Shown: positions 7,913 to 26,200 of the stretch, piece after piece
Layout of the letters: each line of letters opens with the position of its first letter
Numbering within the stretch: position 1 is the first letter of the stretch
From: Mytilus californianus
Lineage: Eukaryota
NCBI RefSeq assembly: GCF_021869535.1
Contig: NW_026262723.1
Location: forward strand, 83,514,001 to 83,578,000
Direction: 5' to 3'
DNA length: 64,000 bases
Notes under the pieces: generated by a model
Database searches by the model: none
The model's input: the letters and a program-made list of their open reading frames with translations, nothing else
Told to the model about the DNA's origin: nothing
Made by a program: the position numbers and the translations under genes

Positions 7913-9208
7913 TTAAAAAGGCATGTGAGCTTTTTCAGGAACTTTTCTGTTAATATTCTTGTCTGCTTGTTCCTTTGACTGTTTTTCTGTACGCTCATAA
8001 GGACGTTTAAGAGTATCATGACAAAGAGTAACTCCAAATCCTGGACGATCTGGTAAATCTATAAATCCATCCTTTGGAAGTGGTTCATCTACGAAAAGAT
8101 TGCCAAAATATGGTGTAATTTTGTCTGCTTTTGGGCTAAGATTTATGAATTCGGCTACAGGACAATTCCGAAACGCATACTGCAGATGGTAGGAATACAC
8201 GCTTGATCCATGGGGAATTATGATTGTATCATATGGAGAAGCCATGGCACACACTCGACGCGCCTCGGTAATACCTCCGAGCCAAGTTATATCTGGCTGC
8301 AGAATATCAACACACCCTGCGGTAATTAGTTGCTGAAATCCGTATCTACTGTATTCATGCTCTGCTGTGGTCAACATTACGCTACTTCCGCGTAAGGCGC
8401 TACGAACCTCGTTATATCCAGTGTAATTATCTGGTGGTAGAAACTCTTCCATCCATTTCAGCCCGTATTTTTCAAGTTCTTTAGCTAATTTAATTGCATA
8501 TGGCACAGTAAGAGCCATGTAACAGTCTAACATAAGCGGAAAGTTTGGACCAACCTTCTCTCTCCAATTCTTAAAGAACTCCACATTTTTACGGAAACCT
8601 TCATCGCCTGCTGCTGGCCCGTATGGACATGGTACTTTCGCACCGACGAAACCAAAGTCTTTAGCTATATCTGGTCGTGCTGTTGTACAGTAGACTGGAA
8701 GTCTATCTTTTGTTTTCCCGCCAAGTAAAGCATAAACTGGTTCCTTTCGGATTTTTCCCAATAAATCCCAGATAGCAATATCTACGGCGCTTATTGCCTG
8801 AACAGACAAACCTTTTCTTCCATAATTCCAGGTAGCACGAAACATTTGATCCCAAATAAGCTCAACATCTCGAGGATCTTGACCTTCGACAAAACGACTT
8901 AAATGTTTTTCAACTATATAACACCCAGGTTCTCCGCCAATAGTGATCCCGACACCTGTCGTTCCATCCGTGGCTTCCACCTCGACTACAAGGGATCCAA
9001 GCGCATTAATACCCCATGATTTTCTGGTCGCTGAATACTGTTCGTAACCCGACATTGGATTAGCGACAGGGGTCGGGAACCCGTTAATCCAGTGATCGTC
9101 TTGCACATCATGACAGTCGGCTCCCTGGTCTCCTAGCGACTGCTGCTCAGTAACAAAGGCTCGAACAGCTTTAATTCTGGGGAAATCTCTGCACTTATTG
9201 TTCGACAT
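7913..9208 (-). CDS. rhmD: L-rhamnonate dehydratase-like protein, copy 1 (enolase/mandelate racemase superfamily), 431 aa, intronless CDS
   Basis: Uninterrupted ORF colinear with RhmD/fungal LRA3-LGD1 as recalled: GADCHD, RKSWGINALG, YGRKGL, metal ligands LDCY/WMEEF/AEHEY, QPD-IPHGSS Asp-His dyad, AEF, PGFGV. The symbol is a family label, not proven orthology. Confidence 0.92.
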   Translation of the reverse strand: MSNNKCRDFPRIKAVRAFVTEQQSLGDQGADCHDVQDDHWINGFPTPVANPMSGYEQYSATRKSWGINALGSLVVEVEATDGTTGVGITIGGEPGCYIVEKHLSRFVEGQDPRDVELIWDQMFRATWNYGRKGLSVQAISAVDIAIWDLLGKIRKEPVYALLGGKTKDRLPVYCTTARPDIAKDFGFVGAKVPCPYGPAAGDEGFRKNVEFFKNWREKVGPNFPLMLDCYMALTVPYAIKLAKELEKYGLKWMEEFLPPDNYTGYNEVRSALRGSSVMLTTAEHEYSRYGFQQLITAGCVDILQPDITWLGGITEARRVCAMASPYDTIIIPHGSSVYSYHLQYAFRNCPVAEFINLSPKADKITPYFGNLFVDEPLPKDGFIDLPDRPGFGVTLCHDTLKRPYERTEKQSKEQADKNINRKVPEKAHMPF

Positions 9209-9336
9209 GATGAACCTTTTTTGATGAATTGCAATCTTCCGATGGTTAACAGGTGTAGTTATCAGTACGTACGTGGCTATGTAAATTCATCCTATGCTTA
9301 TTTGTCAACAACACCTTACCTATCAAATACTAGCTT

Positions 9337-9346
9337 TATTTATATA
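9337..9346 (-). promoter_or_regulatory. Candidate TATA box of dehydratase copy 1
   Basis: Minus strand reads TATATAAATA about 130 nt upstream of the ATG. Confidence 0.45.
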
Positions 9347-12164
9347 AAGGTATCTTATAGTTGATAAACACCGTCCGTGGGAAAGATAGAGATAGATGGG
9401 GCAATTGATAATGGAGATTAAATAAAGAGCTCATTGAAGGTCGCATCAGTCGGCCCGATAAATTACGGGGCAACAGTTAATTAAAGTCCACAATATAAAC
9501 AATCATATGGAAAGCAGTTGATAATTTATCCTTCATTCTGTTATTTTTGTTATGTTATGTTTTTATCGTTTTAACAATTATTGATAAATGTTATTGTTAA
9601 TTCACAGCGTCTGGTATTTATGGAAGTCATTTATTCGCTTATATTTTTTATAGTTTGAAATAATACAAAATTGTGTCTTTATTTATTCTTTATTTTCATC
9701 TCTGTTTTACCGTTTTTGTATTGCAGAAGGGTTATCTGTTCATGCCATTGAAGTACACTCGGAAGTACAGCTGTTTATAGCAAAGTGTAGGACGTTGGGA
9801 TTTTTATATCACAAATCATCAAGTACTTTTTAGTACTTTGAGTGTGCTTCAGTAATTGAATGCATTCTTGATCTTTCTTGAAAGGTATTATTTGGTGTTG
9901 GTCCAATTGAACTGGTGTTTTTGTTCGTGAGGCATTACGTTTATCGTACCAAATCTAACAGGACATGGCTTAGAAGATATACATCACACACAGCCAATCG
10001 GACACCCTCCTTATCATTGGTTTTACCGCCAGATGGAATAAGTCCAGGTGATCATATAGTGCTACCCAAGTCAACTAATTGGGGTAACATAATCCCCCGC
10101 CCCCTGAAAAAAAGAAACATTACATACAATAATTGAACAAAAACATTAAGATAATAAACTTTATCAATATTTGTAATACGGCAATAATAATGTAAACTGT
10201 GTGTGAGATGCCACTTCTTATTAGATATATATTCCTGCAGTTGGAATCATAATGCGAAAAAAAAACTCGAGTACAGCCAAAACGACTAATGTGACACAGC
10301 TGCTTATGTGAAGCGGCGAAAATGTTTTATTATAAATGAAATAGTTGACATATGGCACATTTAACTTGTTTAAATGTGAGGTAGGAAACAACTGTTCAAT
10401 GAAAGAAATGTTATTGCCTGGTCGTTTATTTAAGGCTGAGGTTGCAATTTCAGGCCATTAAAATTTACCAGTGATATATTAATTTTATCCTTAGAAAGTC
10501 AGTATTTCCTGTCTTTGAATTATTTCTCAATGCATGTAATTGCATATAATTTTGTAGGTGTAGCTTATTCAGAAGGTACGATTCAGAACATCAATAAATA
10601 AAGCGGTTGAGTCATATAAGCTTATATTAAACTCCAAATCGACGGTCAATTATTTGCGCCTTTAATTGAAATCTTTTTCCTTCCGTTCAAGTCGTTTGAT
10701 AGCTGAGCGTGCAGTTTTGTTTGTACATTGCATGGTAGCTATCGTGAATCTATAAACAGATAATATGATAGTTCAAATATGTTGATAAGTTTTCTTACGA
10801 TAACCAAATTCACCAGATAGTTTAATTTATATTTAACCTATAGCTGTACAATGTAACCTATGGGAATGCAACAAGAGTATAAATCTCAATAACCGAAAAT
10901 TATACCATAGCTATCTATGGTATAATTTTCACAATTATACCATGGTTTTGTTGTATTTGGTATTCGAAAAGAAAAAAAGGAAGATAGCAAGGCCTATTCG
11001 AGGCCGCCTGATTTTTTTTAAATAGGAACAACAGAGTCAGTGTAGGGGCCACTAAGCTAAACCGCCCGCTTTGCACCAGCCGATATAAATGAATGCCTAG
11101 GGTGGGAATCGAACCCACATACACCAACTCCGTTGTCCTATATTTTTAAATGAACGAAAATTCGATTCAAGAACAAAGTTTTAAAAAAAAAGTATATATA
11201 AATATATTATTATATTATACTTGAAAATATAATTCGATTTTCGGTTATTGAGATGTATACTTGGATTGTAGTCCCTTAGGATCAACTGTATAGCTACATG
11301 TAAAGGTTGAAATTTGCCGTGGCGGCTTTTTAAGGGGGAGGAAGGGGGAAGGCATGCCCCTTTCAAGAAGCTTTATATATGGTAAATGCATAGATATTTC
11401 GTTTTATTACTCCAAATATTGGATGGCTAGACCCCCCCCCCCCCCCTCCTTTTCAAAATCCTGGATCCGTATCCGATTTTATATACATCTTAATTTAACG
11501 ATTTGCTTAAGTAATAACTATAATGTTGGGCCGTTAAGAATAGAAAGCGTCTGGTTACTCTAAATAAAGGTGAACTTTTGTTTAAATTATCTATAGTCTA
11601 CATGTGATTTTTAATGATCTTTAATCGTGATCATTTTGAAATCCTTTTTAATTAGATTCAATTAAATGAACAACTTGGGCTTCTGGTACAAATTAAAACA
11701 TGGAATGATTCATCCAAACTCTCAGAAAGATTCTTGTGAATTAAATTTCCACAGAATTATAAATTAATACCAAAAACTTAAAAACATTTCAAATATTTTG
11801 ATAAAATAAAATAAAAAACTAACCCTTTGCAGTTCAACTTTAAATCTGGGTTCCAGAAATCTTTCAAACTATATCTTGCGTCCATATACATACAGAACAT
11901 ATAATTCCTTCAACAGTTTTTAGTCTGTAACGTTACCCGTCACCAATGTAGATGTGCATCCATCGCTGTCGAAAAATCTTGTCCAACTGATTTCCCCGCT
12001 GTTTCAGAAGCCCGTGCGTATTTTATAAAGTAGGCGGAGCTTAATGTGTAAGGTCCTAAAAGGGTAATTTGACCGATTCTTATCAAAATTATTTTTGAAG
12101 TTAATAAACAAAAATATATGAAATATACATTTTTAAACAACAACATATGCAATAGGTTAAAACA

Positions 12165-12345
12165 GATATTTCATATATTTTGGTTAGTTTTGTGGTGTTT
12201 CGTAAATTATACCATAGTTTTTTGTTGAAACCCCTCGGCAACCTCACTCGACTTCGTCTCGTGAGGTTATTGCCGGGGGTTTCAACAAAAGCTATGGTAT
12301 AATTTACGAAACACCACAAAACTATTCAAAAGATATGAAATATCT
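12165..12345. mobile_element. Foldback/palindromic MITE
   Basis: ~63-bp arms 12185-12247 and 12261-12324 are near-perfect inverted repeats; the flanks (gatatttcata/tatgaaatatc) are also inverted. Confidence 0.8.
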
Positions 12346-12944
12346 ATAACATATCAAGGTCAGACTAACAACGATAGTGTTGATACAATTATAATATAAG
12401 AAATAAATCAGAGATTTGTTGAGGTAAACGCAAATTAGACAGATCATGCACGGAGACCAAAACATCAACATTTAAAAGCGCATTAAATCGGCGGATGTTG
12501 GGTCTTCATTTGACACTTACTTTAATCCAAAGTTAAAATTGATCGATGTTCTGTATAATTTTATTTTTGCTGCATTTTTTCTGAATAAAATCGATTCCGT
12601 ACTTCGAGTTTGTGACATGCATATATGTTTTACTTAATACATTTATTCTTTTCTGAATTCTATCTATAAATTTCTTTCTAGCATTACTCAAAACAATGTT
12701 TCTTTGCACCTGTACATGACTTTATTGTATGAAATCTTCTTGCAAGCAAATCAGCCGTTTTTTTGTGTGCAATAAGACATATTTCCTATATCGGCGGTTG
12801 GAATACTTTCAAGTTATGCATGCTAAGTGTTACTGCAAGCATTGTTTGATATGGTGACTTTCGTTTTTAGGTGTGTTTATGTCATATGCATACAATACTA
12901 AAATTATTATTTCATTTTTGTTGTTTTGTTTTTGTCGTGTAAGT

Positions 12945-13395
12945 GATCATAATTTAGAAATTGAATTAGGACGTTATAAAAAAATTCAAAGAGAACACAG
13001 ACTGTGCAAAGTTTGTAAAGTTTTAGATGATGAGGAACACTTTTTCCTTCATTGCCAAATTAACAGTAATGTAAGACATTCCCTTATAAATGCAATTAAA
13101 ACCCATTATCCTAATTTTAACCAGCTTGACTCAAACTCTAAACTTAAAACTATTCTAGATCCCAATAAAAATATTTTGTCTAGTGTTGTAGACTATATAA
13201 AGCAATCTATGGAATTGCGAAAATAAGGTCCACATTGGTCAATTATTATATATATATATATATATTATTAATATCAACTTGACTTGTTTAAAACATTTAT
13301 CATGTATTATGTTTCTTGTCACTTGTGTATACAATGTACTATGTTTGCTTTTTAGCCCGCCAGGGTTTCATGTTTTGCAATAAAGTTTATATGTA
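12945..13395 (+). mobile_element. 3' fragment of a non-LTR retrotransposon (C-terminal CCHC-like region)
   Basis: RVSDHNLEIELGRY..RLCKVC..DEEHFFLHC resembles a LINE ORF2 C-terminus; followed by an AT-rich 3' UTR with aataaa. Confidence 0.75.
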
Positions 13396-13404
13396 TACAG
13401 TTTG

Positions 13405-13868
13405 ATCCTTTTTGGTGATATAACTCTTCAACTGTTTCGATTCTTATACAACTTTGGTTCTCAAATATTCGGCTTTGAGTGTTCCTGATGAAGGTAAATC
13501 CAGAAAATCGCTCCGGACCCATGAAATTCATAACGTGTTGTTTTCATTTTTGACAGCACTGGGTCGATACCTCTGCTGGTGGACTATCATTCCCCGAGAG
13601 TATCAACAGCTCAGTAGTCAGTATTTCGGTACTGACATGATTTATTACAAAGTTCTCTAAAATTGTCCGTTTATAAATTTGGAAATTTTAAAGAAACTAA
13701 GGTTCCAACTCCTTCAGGCAGAGTTGAACTTAGATGGATTTGGCAATTTTTAGGTCCTTTTTGGTCATACAACTCTTCAACTGTTTCGGTTCTTACAATA
13801 TTTGGCTAACAGATATTCGGCTTTGAGTGTTCCTGATGAAGATAAATCCTTAAAAGTGCTTCGGACGC
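13405..13868 (+). mobile_element. Retrozyme of a second class (348-bp period) with two degenerate hammerheads
   Basis: CTGATGA at 13485 and 13833 (period 348). The middle is homologous to the 354-bp class (cactgggtcgat...gctggtgga...gtcag..ttcgg..tgacatga). Confidence 0.8.
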
Positions 13869-14210
13869 ATGGAAATATCAAGCAATTAGAAACGAAAGAC
13901 CTACCATTTCTGGCTGACAACAAATGGAAATATCAAGCAAGTAGAAACGAAAGACCTATCATTTCTGGCTGAGGACAAATGGAAATATCAAGCAAGAAGA
14001 AACGAAAGACCTACCATTTTTGGCTGAGGACAAAGGGAAATATCAAGCAAGCACAAACGAAAGACCTACCATTTCTGGCTGAGGACAAATGGAAATATCA
14101 AGCAAGCACAAACGAAAGAACTACCATTTCTGGCTGAGGACAAATGGAAATATCAAGCAAGTACAAACGAAAGACCTATCATTTCTTGCTGAGGACAACT
14201 GAAATATCAA
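13869..14210. repeat. 55-bp minisatellite, ~6 copies
   Basis: Unit atggaaatatcaagcaagtagaaacgaaagacctaccatttctggctgaggacaa at 13869, 13924, 13979, 14034, 14089, 14144. Confidence 0.95.
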
Positions 14211-14242
14211 ATTAAATTGTTTAAGAATGTTTTTTGAAAACA

Positions 14243-14248
14243 TTTATT
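14243..14248 (-). terminator. Candidate polyadenylation signal of dehydratase copy 2
   Basis: AATAAA on the minus strand about 33 nt after the stop. Confidence 0.5.
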
Positions 14249-14280
14249 TCAAACGACCTCATTGTTACAAGGAAGAACAC

Positions 14281-15597
14281 TTAAAATGGCATATGCGCTT
14301 TTTCCACAACAGCCTTCTTAATATTTCGGTCTGCTTGTTCTTGGCTTTGTTCCTCTGTTCTCTGATAGGGACGTCTGAGTGTATCGCGACAAAGAGTTAC
14401 ACCAAATCCAGGACGATCTGGTAAATCAATGAATCCGTTAGCTGGCAGAGGTTCGTCTAGGAAAAGACCACTAAAGAATGGGGATATTGTATCAGCCTTT
14501 GGACTTAAATTGATAAATTCAGCAATTGGACAGTTTTGAAAAGCATATTGTAGATGGTATGAATACACACTTGATATATGAGGAATTACCATAATATCAT
14601 AAGGAGATGCCATTGCGCATATCCTACGTGCTTCGGTAATACCTCCGAGCCAAGTGATGTCTGGCTGAAGAATATCTACACATCCTCTTGAAATCAACTG
14701 TTCAAATCCATATCTGCTGTACTCATGCTCCCCTGTAGTAAGAAGGACAGTGCTGCCGCGCATTGAATCACGAACATCGCTGTATCCGGTGTAATTATCT
14801 GGCGGAAGAAATTCTTCGATCCACTTCAGTCCATATGTTTCTAGTGCTTTTGCGAGTTTGATAGAATACGGTACAGTCAATGCCATGTAACAGTCTAACA
14901 TTAAAGGAAAATCAGGTCCGACCTTTTCCCGCCAGTTCTTGAAAAATTCTACATTCTTTCGAAAACCTTCATCACCAGCTGATGGCCCATAAGGACACGA
15001 AACCTTTGCCCCTACAAATCCAAGCTCTTTTGCAATGTCTGGTCGCGTAGTCGTGCAATAAACAGGGAGTCTCTGTTTAGTTTTACCGCCAAGCAAGGCA
15101 TATACTGGCTCTTGTCTAATTTTTCCAATCAAATCCCAAAGCGCAAGATCAACTGCGCTTATTGCTTGAACCGATAGCCCTTTCCTACCGTAATTCCACG
15201 TCGCCCGAAACATCTGGTCCCACATAAGTTCAACATCTCTGGGGTCCTGACCTTCAATGAATCGACTAAGATGATGTTCCACTATGTAGCATCCAGGTTC
15301 TCCACCGATTGAGATCCCCACACCAGTCGTACCGTCAGTGGCTTCAACTTCGACAACTAAGGAGCCAAGTGCGTTAATGCCCCATGATTTCCATGTGGCT
15401 GCATACTGATCATATCCCGACATAGGATTTGCAATTGGTGTTGGATATCCATTAATCCAGTGTTTATCATCAACGTCATAACAGTCTGCTCCTTGGTCCT
15501 TTCCTTTGTCATCACTGGCATTGTTGTCAGAAATGTAAGCTCGGACTGCTTTTATACGAGGAAATTTCCGACATGTTGTCTTAATTATAGTAGTCAT
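14281..15597 (-). CDS. rhmD: L-rhamnonate dehydratase-like protein, copy 2, 438 aa, intronless CDS
   Basis: Paralog of copy 1 over its whole length, with the same EKAHMPF C-terminus. True start is probably Met44 of the listed ORF (MTTIIKTT): homology starts there, and a pyrimidine tract plus CAG acceptor sits 21 nt upstream at 15619-15621. Confidence 0.9.
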   Translation of the reverse strand: MTTIIKTTCRKFPRIKAVRAYISDNNASDDKGKDQGADCYDVDDKHWINGYPTPIANPMSGYDQYAATWKSWGINALGSLVVEVEATDGTTGVGISIGGEPGCYIVEHHLSRFIEGQDPRDVELMWDQMFRATWNYGRKGLSVQAISAVDLALWDLIGKIRQEPVYALLGGKTKQRLPVYCTTTRPDIAKELGFVGAKVSCPYGPSAGDEGFRKNVEFFKNWREKVGPDFPLMLDCYMALTVPYSIKLAKALETYGLKWIEEFLPPDNYTGYSDVRDSMRGSTVLLTTGEHEYSRYGFEQLISRGCVDILQPDITWLGGITEARRICAMASPYDIMVIPHISSVYSYHLQYAFQNCPIAEFINLSPKADTISPFFSGLFLDEPLPANGFIDLPDRPGFGVTLCRDTLRRPYQRTEEQSQEQADRNIKKAVVEKAHMPF

Positions 15598-18500
15598 TTT
15601 ACAACCAAGCTTGAAAACCTGATAAATAAGTATAATGATAAAAAACATCTGATAGTGAAAGATAACGTATGCCATCTCACGGACAGCAAAGTTGATGATA
15701 AACAGATGAATAATTTTCTTAACCAAAAGGTCAGATGCGATATTGTCAATTTCCTTTTCTTATCAACTTTTTTTAATAAAATCAATATGAAAACAGCTTG
15801 GTAGCCAAAATATACTTTGATGGATTGTAAAGTTGGATGCCTTCCTTCGGAAATGCATGTCATTCATGTAACGAACAATTCCTCCGATAAAAACGCTTCC
15901 CCCTCTTTTTATGCCGAATTCATAGAACAGAAACAAACTTCAAGTACTTTCAAAGCGGTTTGTGTTTGTACCGGCCGACAAAACAGCCAACATGTGGTGC
16001 TGGTATGCCGTAAATACTACATGGACGTTCTTAAGAATGAGATTTTAAATTCTTCTACATTCAAGTCCGTGCGCTCCACAGAGAGTCATATAGTAAACAA
16101 GCATATCAAAACCACATCACAGCTTAAGGCCTCTTCTGAACAATTGAAGGTCCCTACTAAGGATTGGTTACCTAAACTACACACAAAAAAGTCAAATATC
16201 GTATCATCTCGGCCTCTAGTAAGTGATCTACAACTGATCTTTCAGTGCCTTTTTTTTTAAACTAGTTCCATAACTAATATCAAAGAATCTATCATTAACT
16301 TTTGTAATAAAATATATGAAAATAGTGGAATTAACTAATTTTGGAGTGTAAAAAATTCCTTGGATGTTTTAGATAAATTACGTGCTTTTGATAGTCCTTT
16401 TGATTCTGTTGACAGTTTTGACTTTTCAACTCTTTACACTACACTTCCACACAATCTTATCAAACAAAAGTTTTCCTATTTAATTAACTGGTCGTTTGGT
16501 AAATCTGAATGCAAATATATTTGCTGCAACTCATTTAAAGCCTTCTTCTCTAATGAGAAAGGTAAATATGCTAGATATACTTACTGGAGGTGTGATGAGA
16601 TGATTGAAGCTGTTAATTTTCTCCTTTATAACAATTATGTACGTTTCGGCAATAAAGTTTATCGACAGGTAGTATGTATTCCTATGGGCACCAATTGCGC
16701 CCCTTTAATATCAGACTTGTTCTTGTACTGTTATGAATCACAGTTTATGACCAAACTCAGTACAGACCCGTCTAAATTGCATTTAATTGATAAATTCAAC
16801 AACACTTACCGTTATCTTGATGATATTTTTTCGTTAAATAATCAAGAATTTTTTAAATATCCTGCCGAAATTACTCAAAGGAACTTACTCTAAATAATTC
16901 AAATGTAAATGGTAATAACTGTCCTGTCCTAGATGTAGATATTTCAGTTTCACACGGGAAACTCTACACTTAAATTTACGACAGAAGGGACGATTTTTCG
17001 TTCCCTATTGTTAATTTTCCTTTTCTGGACGGTGATGTTCCTTTGGCACCATCTTACGGTGTTTATATATCACAACTCGTTCGCTACGCCCGTGTCTACT
17101 GTGACGTTTTGGATTTCAATGAACGTAATCTATGTATTACTGGTAAATTATAAGTCAGGGATTTCGTTACCACAAATTACTTAAAACCTTTACTAAATTC
17201 TTCCATAGATATAAAGATTTGGTTTTGAAGATTGGTTGTACCTGTAGAAAACTCATTTCAAACGGGATAGCAAATCCTAATTTTTACGAAGATGTTGTTT
17301 ACCGAGCCCGGAAATTTAGAAACGATCCGGGTAAACATATCGATCCTTTAAATAAACTTATTCTAAAAGGGTACCAATTCAACACTGTAATTAGATCTTT
17401 GAATATTGTTTTTATTGGTATTAAAATTGATTTTGTTATCAGTAAATTAAAATCAAACTAAGTATTATTTTTATATGTATATACATATGCATATTCATGG
17501 CTCTACAAGCTGTCGATACCTGTATCTTGGCATTGCACAAGGTCGTGTATTTCTCTGACTGTTTATGACGTCTTTACACTAAATCTATTGAATGTTGGAT
17601 GTGTACTGATTGATATTTTAGTCTTAGATGCATGATTTTTTATTGGTTGTTATTGGCTTTGAACAACTAGCTGTCAGTAACTACGAGTACTCTCAGATCT
17701 GTACTTAGTGTCTTTTTGTTGTGGGGATGTATAAATACCCTGGCACGTCCACTCTGTGTTTTTGTTACTTGTTTTTGCTTTGTATCTATCTGATGAGTTA
17801 AACCCTTTTCAACTGATTTTTATAGTTTGTTCATATGTTGTACTGTTACACCACTGTCCAAGATTAGGGGGAGGGTTGGGCACCCGCTAACATGTTTAAC
17901 CCCGCCACATTCTGTATGTGCCTGTCCCAAGTCAGGATCCTGTAATTCAGTGGTTGTCGTTTGTTGCTGTATATCATATTTGTTTTTCGTTTATTATGTT
18001 GTACATAAATCAGGCCATTAGTTTTCTCGTTTGAATACTTTTACATTTGTCATTTCGGGGCCTTCTATGGCTGACTATGCGGTATTGGCTTTGCTCATTG
18101 TTGAAGGCCGTACGGTGACCTATAGTTGTTAATTTCTGTGTCATTTGGTATCTTGTGGAGAGTTGTCTCATTAAGGAAATGTTTTATCATGATTTACTCC
18201 TTTTTAGACTGTAATATTCAGTTTTCTGTCTATGAAGAAATAACATAAAAAATGTGGTGCACACTGAATAACTCGCGTAGCGGGTTATTCAAAAGTGTGC
18301 ACCACATTTTTTATGTTATTTCGAATAGACAAAAAAAGTATTACAGTCATTCCTTATAATTTAATTCTAAAAATTCGTAAGGGTTCCGCGGAACCCAGTG
18401 TCTCGCCTACTTTTCTGTTAATCGCAGGCTCAACAAAAATGAGGAAGTAAATCAATAAAAATATTCCCCTTGATACTATCTTCTGATTGTAAGAAGCTTC

Positions 18501-23201: not shown

Positions 23202-26200
23202 ATGACCACCACTATTCCAAAAACTATGAAAGCTCTTGTGAAAACGAAAGAAGGTAGTTCTTTTGAATACAAGGATGTACCTGTTCCTGAGCCTAAAGAT
23301 GACGAAGTCTTACTTAAAGTAGATGCAATTTCAGTTTGTGGATCCGACATATCTTTGTACATGTGGAATGAAGTTGCAAGAGTTATAGCCACGGTGCCGT
23401 TTATACCAGGACACGAATGTGCAGGAACAGTTGTTAAATGTGGACCAAAAGCCGACATCGCTGTAGGAACAAAAGTTGGAGTTGAGAACCACTACTTTTG
23501 TGGAAGTTGTTTCCAATGCAAGAATGATTGTCGTGAAATTTGTAAAAACATGGGACAGTTTGGACATGGCAAGAAAACGGAGCATGGTGCATGTTCAGAG
23601 TATACCATAGTCTCAGCGAAGTATTTGTATCAGCTTACGAGAAATTTAAGTAAGTGGAAAAAACACCCACTTATATCCTATATATTGACCCTTAGATTAA
23701 ACGTTCTAAATATAGTCCATTTATATAGTAACAGTTGATAAAGTTTTTACATTTAAATCTCGCTGGCCTCTTGGTTGGCAAAATAGTATATTTTCGTGGC
23801 TAAAACTATTTAAAATACCTATAACAGTTACTATTGAAAATAAATCAGTTTAATTTAATAAAATAAAATCAAATAATTTTATTGGTGTAAATTCCAATAC
23901 AGGAATGATACCAGCTGACATTTACAAAATACAAAAACAAAAATAAACAACAAAAAAAGACATATACAAAGACATTTTTTCTCAATGATAAGAGACGCAT
24001 ATTTTATAATATAACTACATTGCGTGGAGGTATTATTCATAATATGTGCTATCAAGCTATTACAATAAGCGTTAATACTATAACAGTTCTCAACAACATT
24101 ATGTTTGCTTTATTAAAATAAATGTTCTTATCATGCATATCGCTTATTCCAGCTACACATACATTACATATGTCAGTAACATTACTTTTACTTTAATATG
24201 ACTTTGAGGCACTTTACACACAAAGCTAGATTTCGTTTTATATCGACACACAATTTCAGAAAACAAAAGAACAATTCCGTAGTTCGTGAAATTGAAGTAC
24301 ATGAATACCAATACAAACATATTTTTAGATATCAACTGAGTTACTGCCGTCTGATAGTATTCAAATAATAAAAACCTTTTTTTTTTTTTCATAAAGTTGA
24401 CAATTTTTACATCCACTTCATTTGTACTTTGGTGGATATATAGTTTTCTCATTGGCAATCATACCACATCTCCTTATTTTTATATTATACACTAAGTCTA
24501 TAAAATATCTTGTCACTGAAGCACGCTGTGTTGAAGCATCGGGGTGGGGACCCTTAGTAATATCTGTTCATAACATAAATTCACGAATGCGTATATTTTA
24601 AGGACCATTCTGTTTTCCCAGATTAGCATTTCATATGCCTATGGTCTATCTTTATCGCTTTTCTTGTCAGTTTGGAATCATTAAAGACTTTACTTTTTGT
24701 TTAAGGTTTTTATGTGGGTTTGAGATGTATATTCTAGTATCCTGATCATGTGATGCAATTAATTATACATTGCTTACCGCCACTAGTAGACAATGGTTGT
24801 CTTTTGTATCAACTGTGAAAGGATAGATATAAGAAGATGTGGTATGAGTGCCAATGAGACAACTCTCCATCCAAGTCACAATTGGTAAAAGTAAACCATT
24901 ATAGGTCAAAGTACGGCCTTCAACGCGGAGCATAGGCTCACACCGAACAGCAAGCTGTAAAGGGCCCTAAAAATGACTAATGTAAAACCATTCAAACAGG
25001 AAAACCAACAGTCTAATCTATATAAAAAACGAGAAACACTTATGAACCACATCAACAAACGACAACCACTGAACAACAGGTTCCTGTACAGAATGGCCCA
25101 CATCAACAAACGACAACCACTGAACATCAGGTTCCTGTACAGAATGGCCAACATCAACAAACGACAACCACTGAACAACAGGTTCCTGTACAGAATGGCA
25201 TTGGGATAATTTCTTCATTAATTAAAAGCTTTTATAAAACAAATAAATGTAGAGTAAATTATTAACCATATTTCAGACGCGGATCAAACAGCTATGCTAG
25301 AGCCGCTAGGTGTGGCACATAATGCCGTTGAGAGATTAGATGTTGCAGGTGAAGATGCTCTTATCATCGGGTGTGGACCAGTTGGATTGTTAGCTGGAAT
25401 GGTGGCTAAAGCTGAAGGAGCTAAAAGGTGGTTTACTTAATTTATTCTATTGAACGAAAGATTGAACACGGTGTTTAAGGTTTATAGGAATTTCAGATTG
25501 ATTTGCATTCCATTTGACATCAGTAAGAGATTGTTCACAACACCACCATACAACACACACAAACAACCCCTACCATAAAGAAAAACTCATATGCAAAACA
25601 AGGACAAGCAAATAAACAATTAACAAAACATAAGAACAGAAAGAATAGAAATAAAAACAAAACAAAAGAGGCAATTAAATTTTCCAATAAAAGTCTTGAA
25701 TAAAAACTTTCTGAATTATTTTATAACAATGAGAATGAAATTTTCAGTTTGAATTCTTGGATTTTTTTCAAAATAATATACTGCTCGCGAAAAAAAAAAG
25801 AAACTGCATTTCTCAATATATTTCAAACATTAACTTTATATATTTGCAATTACGATAACTGAACAAGTTTATGTTTTTGAATGTTGCAAAGGTTGGCATT
25901 CATTCATTCATTCATATCTTTAATTCCTCACAAATGAGATTAAATGAACATGCAATTAGTGAATATAAGTAAATGTCATAATAACAAACAAAATATCAGT
26001 ATGAAAGCAAAAGGAATAAGGTAGATACATAATAGATAAATGATTTGTTTATACAAGCAACATTAAAAGTATTTATGCAGTAACATATCATGTATTGGCA
26101 CGCCTAATATCACTGTCTCAGAGATCGACTATATTCTGCTACACACTGGACAACAGTTTGAGAAACTGAACAGATTCATCCATGTTGGAAAAATGTGTCA

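Follow-up and report, generated by a model that had tools for sequence, protein, structure and literature searches.

We estimate at about 50% the probability that copy 2, one of two tandem paralogs in a 64,000-nucleotide stretch of the Mytilus californianus genome (hereafter the window), encodes a transcribed and selectively maintained paralog of a conserved animal enzyme of the L-rhamnonate dehydratase type that would still be active but on a different substrate, its distal pocket having become less polar. A functional shift is favoured over decay because copy 2 is under purifying selection, because its substitutions are focused on the active site, and because a duplicate in a scallop carries convergent R59W and G330A changes.

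Gene structure and genomic context

Copy 1 and copy 2 are two uninterrupted open reading frames, both on the minus strand, and their proteins share 82% identity. The copy 2 coding sequence was defined from its open reading frame together with Pfam, NCBIfam and AlphaFold2 (AF2)/Foldseek evidence.

14281..15597, minus strand: copy 2 coding sequence (CDS), RhmD-family paralog with a putatively remodelled pocket, 438 amino acids, single exon, stop codon included
7913..9208, minus strand: copy 1 CDS, canonical reference paralog, 431 amino acids, uninterrupted open reading frame, highly constrained
14243..14248, minus strand: AATAAA polyadenylation-type signal of copy 2, 35 nt past the stop codon

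In M. galloprovincialis, a transcript contig includes a spliced 5'UTR exon located about 4 kb 5' of the coding exon. The gene order calpain, Zn-alcohol-dehydrogenase, copy 2, copy 1 is kept in M. edulis, and annotated orthologs of both copies were found in M. edulis, M. galloprovincialis, M. coruscus and M. trossulus, with 93–99% identity; copy 2 of M. californianus and that of M. coruscus are 98% identical. A 455-amino-acid gene model starting at an upstream ATG (P0123) was rejected as the conserved start, the extension having no ATG or being interrupted by stop codons in the congeners. The M. californianus genome as a whole measures 1.65 Gb, is AT-rich and contains many retroelements.

Family membership and fold

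In the enolase superfamily, the chemistry resides in the barrel: Mg2+ polarises the carboxylate, a His-Asp dyad takes the alpha-proton and protonates the leaving 3-OH, and the enediolate is stabilised by a Glu. Specificity is determined by the capping domain, whose 20s and 50s loops close over the substrate at its distal part. The absence of a Lys-x-Lys base on strand 2 is a trait of the rhamnonate dehydratases (RhamD).

The Pfam domains MR_MLE_N (PF02746) and MR_MLE_C (PF13378) were found in both copies, and both score above the curated cutoff of 393 bits for the NCBIfam L-rhamnonate dehydratase equivalog NF011968 (506.2 bits for copy 2 and 515.4 for copy 1). Copy 2 was modelled with AF2 at a pLDDT of 92.1 and a pTM of 0.92, low confidence being confined to about residues 21–40, which correspond to the 20s-loop region, and Foldseek superposed the model on solved RhmD structures with TM scores of 0.93–0.96 and rmsd values of 1.5–2.3 Å. 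Copy 2 can thus be assigned, from its sequence and predicted fold, to the mandelate racemase subgroup of the enolase superfamily, with the N-terminal capping domain, the modified TIM barrel, the three carboxylate Mg ligands (ends of barrel strands 3, 4 and 5) and the His-Asp dyad (ends of strands 7 and 6) all recognisable.

A homolog search returned family members with 64–77% identity in molluscs, a brachiopod, annelids, a flatworm, sponges and choanoflagellates, and because of this spread the family appears to be an old holozoan gene. A recent microbial insertion was ruled out by the presence of the family in sponges, choanoflagellates, annelids, brachiopods and many molluscs. Isofunctional L-rhamnonate dehydratases convert L-rhamnonate by dehydration to 2-keto-3-deoxy-L-rhamnonate and are distinguished, according to their annotation, by His33 and Arg59 as substrate ligands in the capping domain; at these positions copy 2 carries Tyr40 and Trp69, and for this reason it should not be named an isofunctional L-rhamnonate dehydratase. 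Among the matches listed, the literature on rhamnonate dehydratase dealt with bacteria, fungi, bioinformatic methods and, in one study, zebrafish ENOSF1, with no animal RhmD-type member, and a literature search found no paper naming rhamnonate dehydratase together with Mytilus. To our knowledge, the animal members of the enolase superfamily besides enolase and ENOSF1 are essentially unstudied. The case of copy 2 is a variant within a well-known family and no novel kind of system.

Substituted pocket residues and intact catalytic core

Both copies were aligned with E. coli K-12 RhmD (L001:8210-9415, 401 amino acids). Tyr40, Trp69 and Ile341 of copy 2 align with H29, R55 and G326 of the current 401-amino-acid E. 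coli protein, which are H33, R59 and G330 in the older 405-amino-acid numbering of the original prediction, also used below. His33 and Arg59 are presumably the substrate-contacting residues of RhmD (UniProt/HAMAP annotation), and the primary source for these roles is reportedly the study of Rakus et al. 2008. The positions of the substituted and catalytic residues, the latter assigned from the alignment, are as follows.

15478..15480, minus strand: Tyr40 codon TAT (GADCYD), His33 position in the 20s loop of the capping domain, CAT to TAT; also Tyr in M. coruscus
15391..15393, minus strand: Trp69 codon TGG (ATWKSW), Arg59 position in the 50s loop; copy 1 codon AGA
14575..14577, minus strand: Ile341 codon ATA (PHI), Gly330 position adjoining the catalytic His; GGA to ATA, two nucleotide changes
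14524..14526, minus strand: Ile358 codon (V347I), two residues ahead of Glu349; fifth change on the branch carrying the Tyr/Trp/Ile (Y/W/I) substitutions
14470..14472, minus strand: Ser376 codon AGT, position 365 (E. coli 405-amino-acid numbering)
14893..14895, minus strand: Asp235, predicted Mg ligand (D226)
14815..14817, minus strand: Glu261, predicted Mg ligand (E252)
14728..14730, minus strand: Glu290, predicted Mg ligand (E280)
14659..14661, minus strand: Asp313 of the predicted Asp-His dyad (D302)
14578..14580, minus strand: His340, predicted catalytic general base/acid (H329)
14518..14520, minus strand: Glu360 of the AEF motif (E349), end of strand 8, predicted transition-state stabiliser

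The corresponding motifs of copy 1 are GADCHD, ATRKSW and PHG, and the differences between the copies described in the original prediction are exact in the sequence. Its further claims that the Tyr and Trp occupy the His33 and Arg59 positions of RhmD, and that the Mg ligands, the Asp-His dyad and the Glu of the AEF motif are unchanged in an intact open reading frame, were borne out by the alignment.

Conservation was assessed on a set of 120 homologs, E. coli RhmD and both window copies. His33 is kept in 111/112 sequences, Arg59 in 117/120 and Gly330 in 121/123. Besides the window's copy 2, the only sequences to deviate are M. galloprovincialis copy 2, with Thr for Arg, and a scallop paralog with Trp for Arg and Ala for Gly, and the six catalytic residues show no variation wherever the residue is present. 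The substitutions of copy 2 are no random variation. At a conservation of at least 97% the alignment has 141 columns; copy 1 agrees with all of them and copy 2 departs from four (H33Y, R59W, G330I and G365S). At position 365 the Gly is invariant in 118/118 eukaryotic homologs and E. coli has Asp; the position is polymorphic or variable among close relatives, an RNA-seq contig from run X9 having Gly there. The crystal structure of Gibberella zeae RhmD naturally has Ala at position 330, which is therefore not strictly diagnostic.

Expression of copy 2

RNA-seq run X9, labelled 'mollusc metagenome', yielded a contig of 1,256 nt covering positions 14327–15581, with 21 differences from the window, none of them in the Y/W/I codons; the read depth of this run was zero in the flanks adjoining the CDS (13900–14304 and 15601–15924). 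Copy 2 is thus transcribed, the X9 contig alone showing it. Fourteen further runs of one organism, presumed to be RNA from their small size, contained 0.3–0.6 of the sampled copy 2 words, like copy 1. Of the raw RNA-seq runs X21 and X22, each sampled at about 6%, one had no reads on the copy 2 CDS and the other a handful, about one-fold depth, and in small transcriptome-sized runs under the organism label of M. californianus itself copy 1 was present and copy 2 was not among the matches listed. Expression of copy 2 is probably weak or restricted in pattern.

Selection on copy 2

Synonymous sites are saturated between copy 1 and copy 2 (nucleotide identity 74%, dN 0.12), so the duplication is older than the genus Mytilus and no dN/dS figure is given for this pair. 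Branch dN/dS values were obtained by fitting pairwise Nei-Gojobori distances to the species tree. Copy 1 has values of 0.00–0.07 on every Mytilus branch, and the evolutionary rate of copy 2 is 2–4 times that of copy 1. On the long internal branch of copy 2, which includes the Y/W/I stem, dN/dS is 0.08, and the terminal values are 0.08 in M. coruscus, 0.09 in M. edulis and 0.15 in M. trossulus, with about 0.84 on the M. galloprovincialis branch. The comparison of M. californianus with M. coruscus copy 2 lies entirely after the fixation of Y/W/I and comprises 8 nonsynonymous and 14 synonymous substitutions (1022 and 292 sites, respectively), giving a dN/dS of 0.16 and a rejection of neutrality (binomial p = 3.6e-5) that rests on these 22 substitutions; the independent copy 2 allele from run X9 gave 0.17. 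Given these low values, both on the branch and after fixation, general relaxation or decay does not explain the M. californianus lineage: a few substitutions entered the most conserved positions, and the remainder of copy 2 stayed constrained.

History of copy 2 across Mytilus

Copy 2 of M. edulis is canonical, with H/R/G at positions 33/59/330, and that of M. coruscus (P0125) has Y/W/I, as in M. californianus. M. galloprovincialis copy 2, examined in two genome models, one ENA contig and the 438-amino-acid Logan contig protein P0001, has H/T/G together with I64M, G88V, F254C, N352D and L353V, and further polymorphic changes. In M. trossulus, copy 2 keeps H and R and is a pseudogene: codon 214 has become an in-frame stop and seven nucleotides (CDS nt 770–776) are deleted; it is not annotated as a gene. 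Parsimony with copy 1 as outgroup maps H33Y, R59W, G330I, V347I and G365S to the common stem of M. californianus and M. coruscus, and four of these five resolved changes fall in columns that are 100% conserved across the family. The Y/W/I triplet, present in M. coruscus and in the X9 contig, is not private to the M. californianus haplotype, which together with the dN/dS of 0.16 answers the reservation attached to the original prediction that the substitutions might be haplotype-specific and evolving at a dN/dS near 1.

Copy 2 is evolutionarily labile: it is canonical in M. edulis, carries a different set of changes in M. galloprovincialis and is a dead gene in M. trossulus, and there is no single conserved new pocket, since the congeners carry R, T or W at position 59. 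This lability weakens the simple story of one new specificity. Thus, of the neofunctionalisation originally proposed, the functional shift is favoured over decay by selection, clustering and the scallop parallel, but the idea of one simple new specificity has lost ground. The M. trossulus pseudogene shows that one congener, at least, can do without copy 2; combined with the differing states of M. edulis and M. galloprovincialis, this indicates that the canonical copy 2 function is dispensable in the genus, a setting where loss and innovation are both expected.

Parallel changes in a scallop and clustering at the active site

Among the 120 homologs, the sole deviant outside Mytilus is LOC110459260 of Mizuhopecten yessoensis (P0023), with H/W/A at the three positions. 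It sits 7 kb from a canonical twin of 426 amino acids to which it is 92% identical, and Pecten maximus has one gene at the corresponding locus. Polarised with Pecten, the scallop variant has accumulated 28 amino-acid changes, including R59W, G330A, W305M, E253D, F254Y, N352D and L353M, against 4 in its twin. The pair has a pairwise dN/dS of 0.13 with a dS of 0.33; three-point synonymous branch lengths are unreliable for this trio (dS to Pecten about 1), and the amino-acid asymmetry and the pairwise dS were used instead. Fifteen of the 29 scallop substituted sites also changed in the Mytilus copy-2 lineage, an overlap well above expectation (p = 3e-6, uncorrected for rate heterogeneity), and when the comparison is confined to columns with at least 95% conservation, both lineages have sites 59, 330 and 352 in common (p = 0.002). 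The scallop tandem duplicate is recent and independent of the Mytilus duplication, and its R59W and enlarged residue 330 are convergent with copy 2.

We delimited an active-site shell formed by the 20s and 50s loops and the neighbours of the six catalytic residues, together about 16% of the protein; it was defined post hoc, so the following p-values are descriptive. Changes fell in the shell in 4/5 cases on the M. californianus and M. coruscus stem (p 0.003), in 5/8 on the M. galloprovincialis branch (p 0.004) and in 11/26 in the scallop variant (p 0.001). No such enrichment was seen on the M. trossulus pseudogene branch (1/8) or on the older copy-2 stem (2/34), and the contrast between the remodelled lineages and these two control branches is still informative despite the post hoc definition.

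Alternative explanations

Copy 2 could have no dehydratase activity and be retained for a non-catalytic role, as a hetero-oligomer partner of copy 1 or as a binding or regulatory protein. The two residues annotated as substrate ligands are lost, and Trp69 may abolish catalysis if Arg59 is needed to bind any substrate; the persisting purifying selection requires some function, and the tandem, 82%-identical paralogs belong to an oligomeric family, with 2 to 10 identical chains per PDB entry. We nevertheless consider this somewhat unlikely, given that the substitutions cluster at the mouth of the active site and not on surfaces, and that the six catalytic residues are kept in M. californianus, M. 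coruscus, M. galloprovincialis and the scallop variant, although the divergence elapsed lends the latter observation little power. If copy 2 were instead a redundant duplicate in early loss, Y/W/I would be loss-of-function changes and the gene would be set to follow the disrupted M. trossulus copy, with its stop at codon 214 and 7-nt deletion. The faster rate of copy 2 relative to copy 1, the few RNA reads and the M. galloprovincialis branch, where dN/dS is about 0.84 and the changes at conserved sites are polymorphic, are in line with such a fate. However, the open reading frame is intact in four species, dN/dS is 0.08 on the Y/W/I branch and 0.16 after it with neutrality rejected, the clustering at the active site in the Y/W/I lineage has no counterpart on the true pseudogene branch, and the same positions changed in parallel in the scallop, all of which make early loss unlikely.

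It is quite unlikely that the substitutions are simply tolerated and that copy 2 still acts on L-rhamnonate, or on whatever copy 1 uses, perhaps with altered kinetics. The NCBIfam equivalog score is barely lower than that of copy 1 (506 against 515 bits) and Ala330 occurs naturally in the Gibberella zeae enzyme, but exchanging Gly for the beta-branched Ile beside the catalytic His is a far more drastic step than exchanging it for Ala, and His33 and Arg59 are constant in all the other full-length homologs examined save paralogs from duplicated loci.

Proposed mechanism and comparison with known systems

Our preferred reading therefore remains that copy 2 would still be catalytic, with a distal pocket of lower polarity, and that specificity would be what changed. 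The three carboxylates would hold Mg2+, the His340-Asp313 dyad would take the alpha-proton of a bound 2-hydroxy-carboxylate and help the loss of its 3-OH, and Glu360 would stabilise the enediolate. In the common ancestor of M. californianus and M. coruscus, polar residues predicted to line the distal pocket were exchanged for bulky hydrophobic ones (H33Y, R59W, G330I), so that the bulk of Ile341 now adjoins the catalytic His. Substrate preference would most likely have shifted to a less hydroxylated or otherwise less polar acid, the type of reaction being unchanged. In mandelate racemase, the non-polar part of the substrate sits in a hydrophobic pocket formed by the 20s-loop flap (PMC9835602), which shows that the scaffold is able to bind non-polar substituents. 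The comparison is an analogy only: mandelate racemase belongs to the same superfamily subgroup and has the same His-Asp dyad, but it is only distantly related to copy 2, has a second Lys base and racemises instead of dehydrating.

Closer relatives of copy 2 are RhmD/YfaW of E. coli and Salmonella (PDB 2i5q, 2p3z, 3cxo), with about 49% identity over the full length, the same two-domain fold (Foldseek TM 0.93–0.95, rmsd about 2 Å) and identical Mg ligands, dyad and Glu349. Unlike these enzymes, copy 2 has Tyr/Trp/Ile in place of His33/Arg59/Gly330 and a C-terminal extension of about 25 residues. Its gene is eukaryotic, as seen in the polyadenylation signal and, for M. galloprovincialis, in the spliced 5'UTR. 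The fungal LRA3 and Gibberella zeae rhamnonate dehydratases (PDB 2p0i, 3fxg) are eukaryotic family members at 45–46% identity and a TM score of 0.94, but they retain His33 and Arg59. Copy 1 and the Mytilus orthologs (XP_071129408.1, XP_063445323.1) share the length class and the C-terminal tail of copy 2, their tandem neighbour, whereas copy 1 keeps the H/R/G that copy 2 has lost. Scallop LOC110459260 is likewise a derived tandem copy, with R59 changed to W, a larger residue 330, changes at the ends of barrel strands, an intact core and an average dN/dS below 1; it differs in keeping His33, in having Ala at 330, in the additional W305M, E253D, N352D and L353M, and in stemming from a much younger duplication (92% identity, dS 0.33).

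Implications

The enolase superfamily is a textbook case of new specificities arising on a fixed catalytic scaffold. Here a single genus offers a natural series consisting of the canonical paralog, a canonical copy 2 in M. edulis, two differently remodelled copy 2 forms and a pseudogene, and the scallop provides an independent replicate at the same two positions. With this series and the scallop, the residues that determine specificity and the speed of a shift after duplication become testable with few recombinant proteins. The automatic name 'L-rhamnonate dehydratase-like' should not pass to copy 2. Tentatively, bivalves may have repeatedly and independently turned tandem duplicates of an ancestral animal enzyme of the rhamnonate dehydratase type into a new isofunctional class, whose hallmarks would be Arg59 to Trp and an enlarged residue 330. 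The substrate of this class would be a 2-hydroxy or deoxy acid of lower polarity, which might come from the algal diet. If true, this would be a new animal activity of the enolase superfamily, reached by convergent remodelling of the active site.

Start codon, gene structure and neighbouring loci

Four features of the genome around the dehydratase pair are considered here:

Window 15598–15648: upstream extension of copy 2 in the public gene model P0123
Window 15925–16250: high-copy repeat directly upstream of copy 2
Window 23202–23738 and beyond (also L010:4443–8759): Zn-dependent alcohol/threonine-dehydrogenase-like gene adjoining copy 2
G000:C143:83505368–83505700 (own contig coordinates; locus L004), ~8.6 kb before the window start: degenerate dehydratase-like fragment

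In the public model of copy 2 (455 aa), translation begins at an ATG further upstream, which lengthens the protein by 17 hydrophobic residues. Because this extension is interrupted or lacks an ATG in M. coruscus, M. edulis and M. galloprovincialis, the conserved start is that of the 438-aa form. In a run of genomic size, contig depth over the repeat is in the tens of thousands. The repeat overlaps the region (beyond ~15723) in which the M. galloprovincialis 5′UTR has lost its alignment to the window and, within the stretch around copy 2 examined for read depth, is the only place where many RNA reads were found.

The label "intronless microbial-type" for the pair (window 7913–15597) needs qualifying. 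Only the coding part of the dehydratase genes is a single exon; an M. galloprovincialis transcript carries a 5′UTR intron of ~4 kb (L011:5513–5555/9638–), and the family was found in sponges, choanoflagellates, annelids, brachiopods and many molluscs.

Moving away from copy 2, the Zn-dependent dehydrogenase-like gene is followed by a calpain gene, an order that is kept in M. edulis; in M. coruscus and M. trossulus, too, the dehydratase locus has the Zn-dependent gene beside it. The degenerate fragment shares 35–39% identity with dehydratase residues 126–242, contains four stop codons and may be what remains of a third enolase-superfamily copy of much greater age.

Duplicated dehydratases in a scallop and other mussels

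The loci compared were (residues in the older 405-aa E. coli RhmD numbering):

L008:10001–11281 and L008:18263–19543: Mizuhopecten yessoensis tandem pair
L013:4046–5355: M. trossulus copy 2 ortholog, flanked by the Zn-ADH gene and copy 1
L011:10001–11317 and L005: M. galloprovincialis copy 2

The Mizuhopecten yessoensis pair, whose members are 92% identical, is of independent origin; in Pecten maximus, the corresponding locus (L009) holds a single gene adjoining a Melibiase_2 gene. Changes are concentrated in the upstream Mizuhopecten copy (28 versus 4 in its twin) and include R59W, G330A, W305M, E253D, F254Y, N352D and L353M.

In M. trossulus, copy 2 survives only as a pseudogene, with an in-frame stop at codon 214, a 7-nt deletion (CDS nt 770–776) and no gene called at the locus; His33 and Arg59 are both still present. 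The M. galloprovincialis copy 2 branch has a dN/dS of ~0.84, and R59T, I64M, G88V, F254C, N352D and L353V are fixed, while further substitutions at conserved or semi-conserved sites (e.g. W134C, S142A) vary between the sampled sequences. With its changes clustered on the active-site face, M. galloprovincialis copy 2 may have undergone a second remodelling, different from the first.
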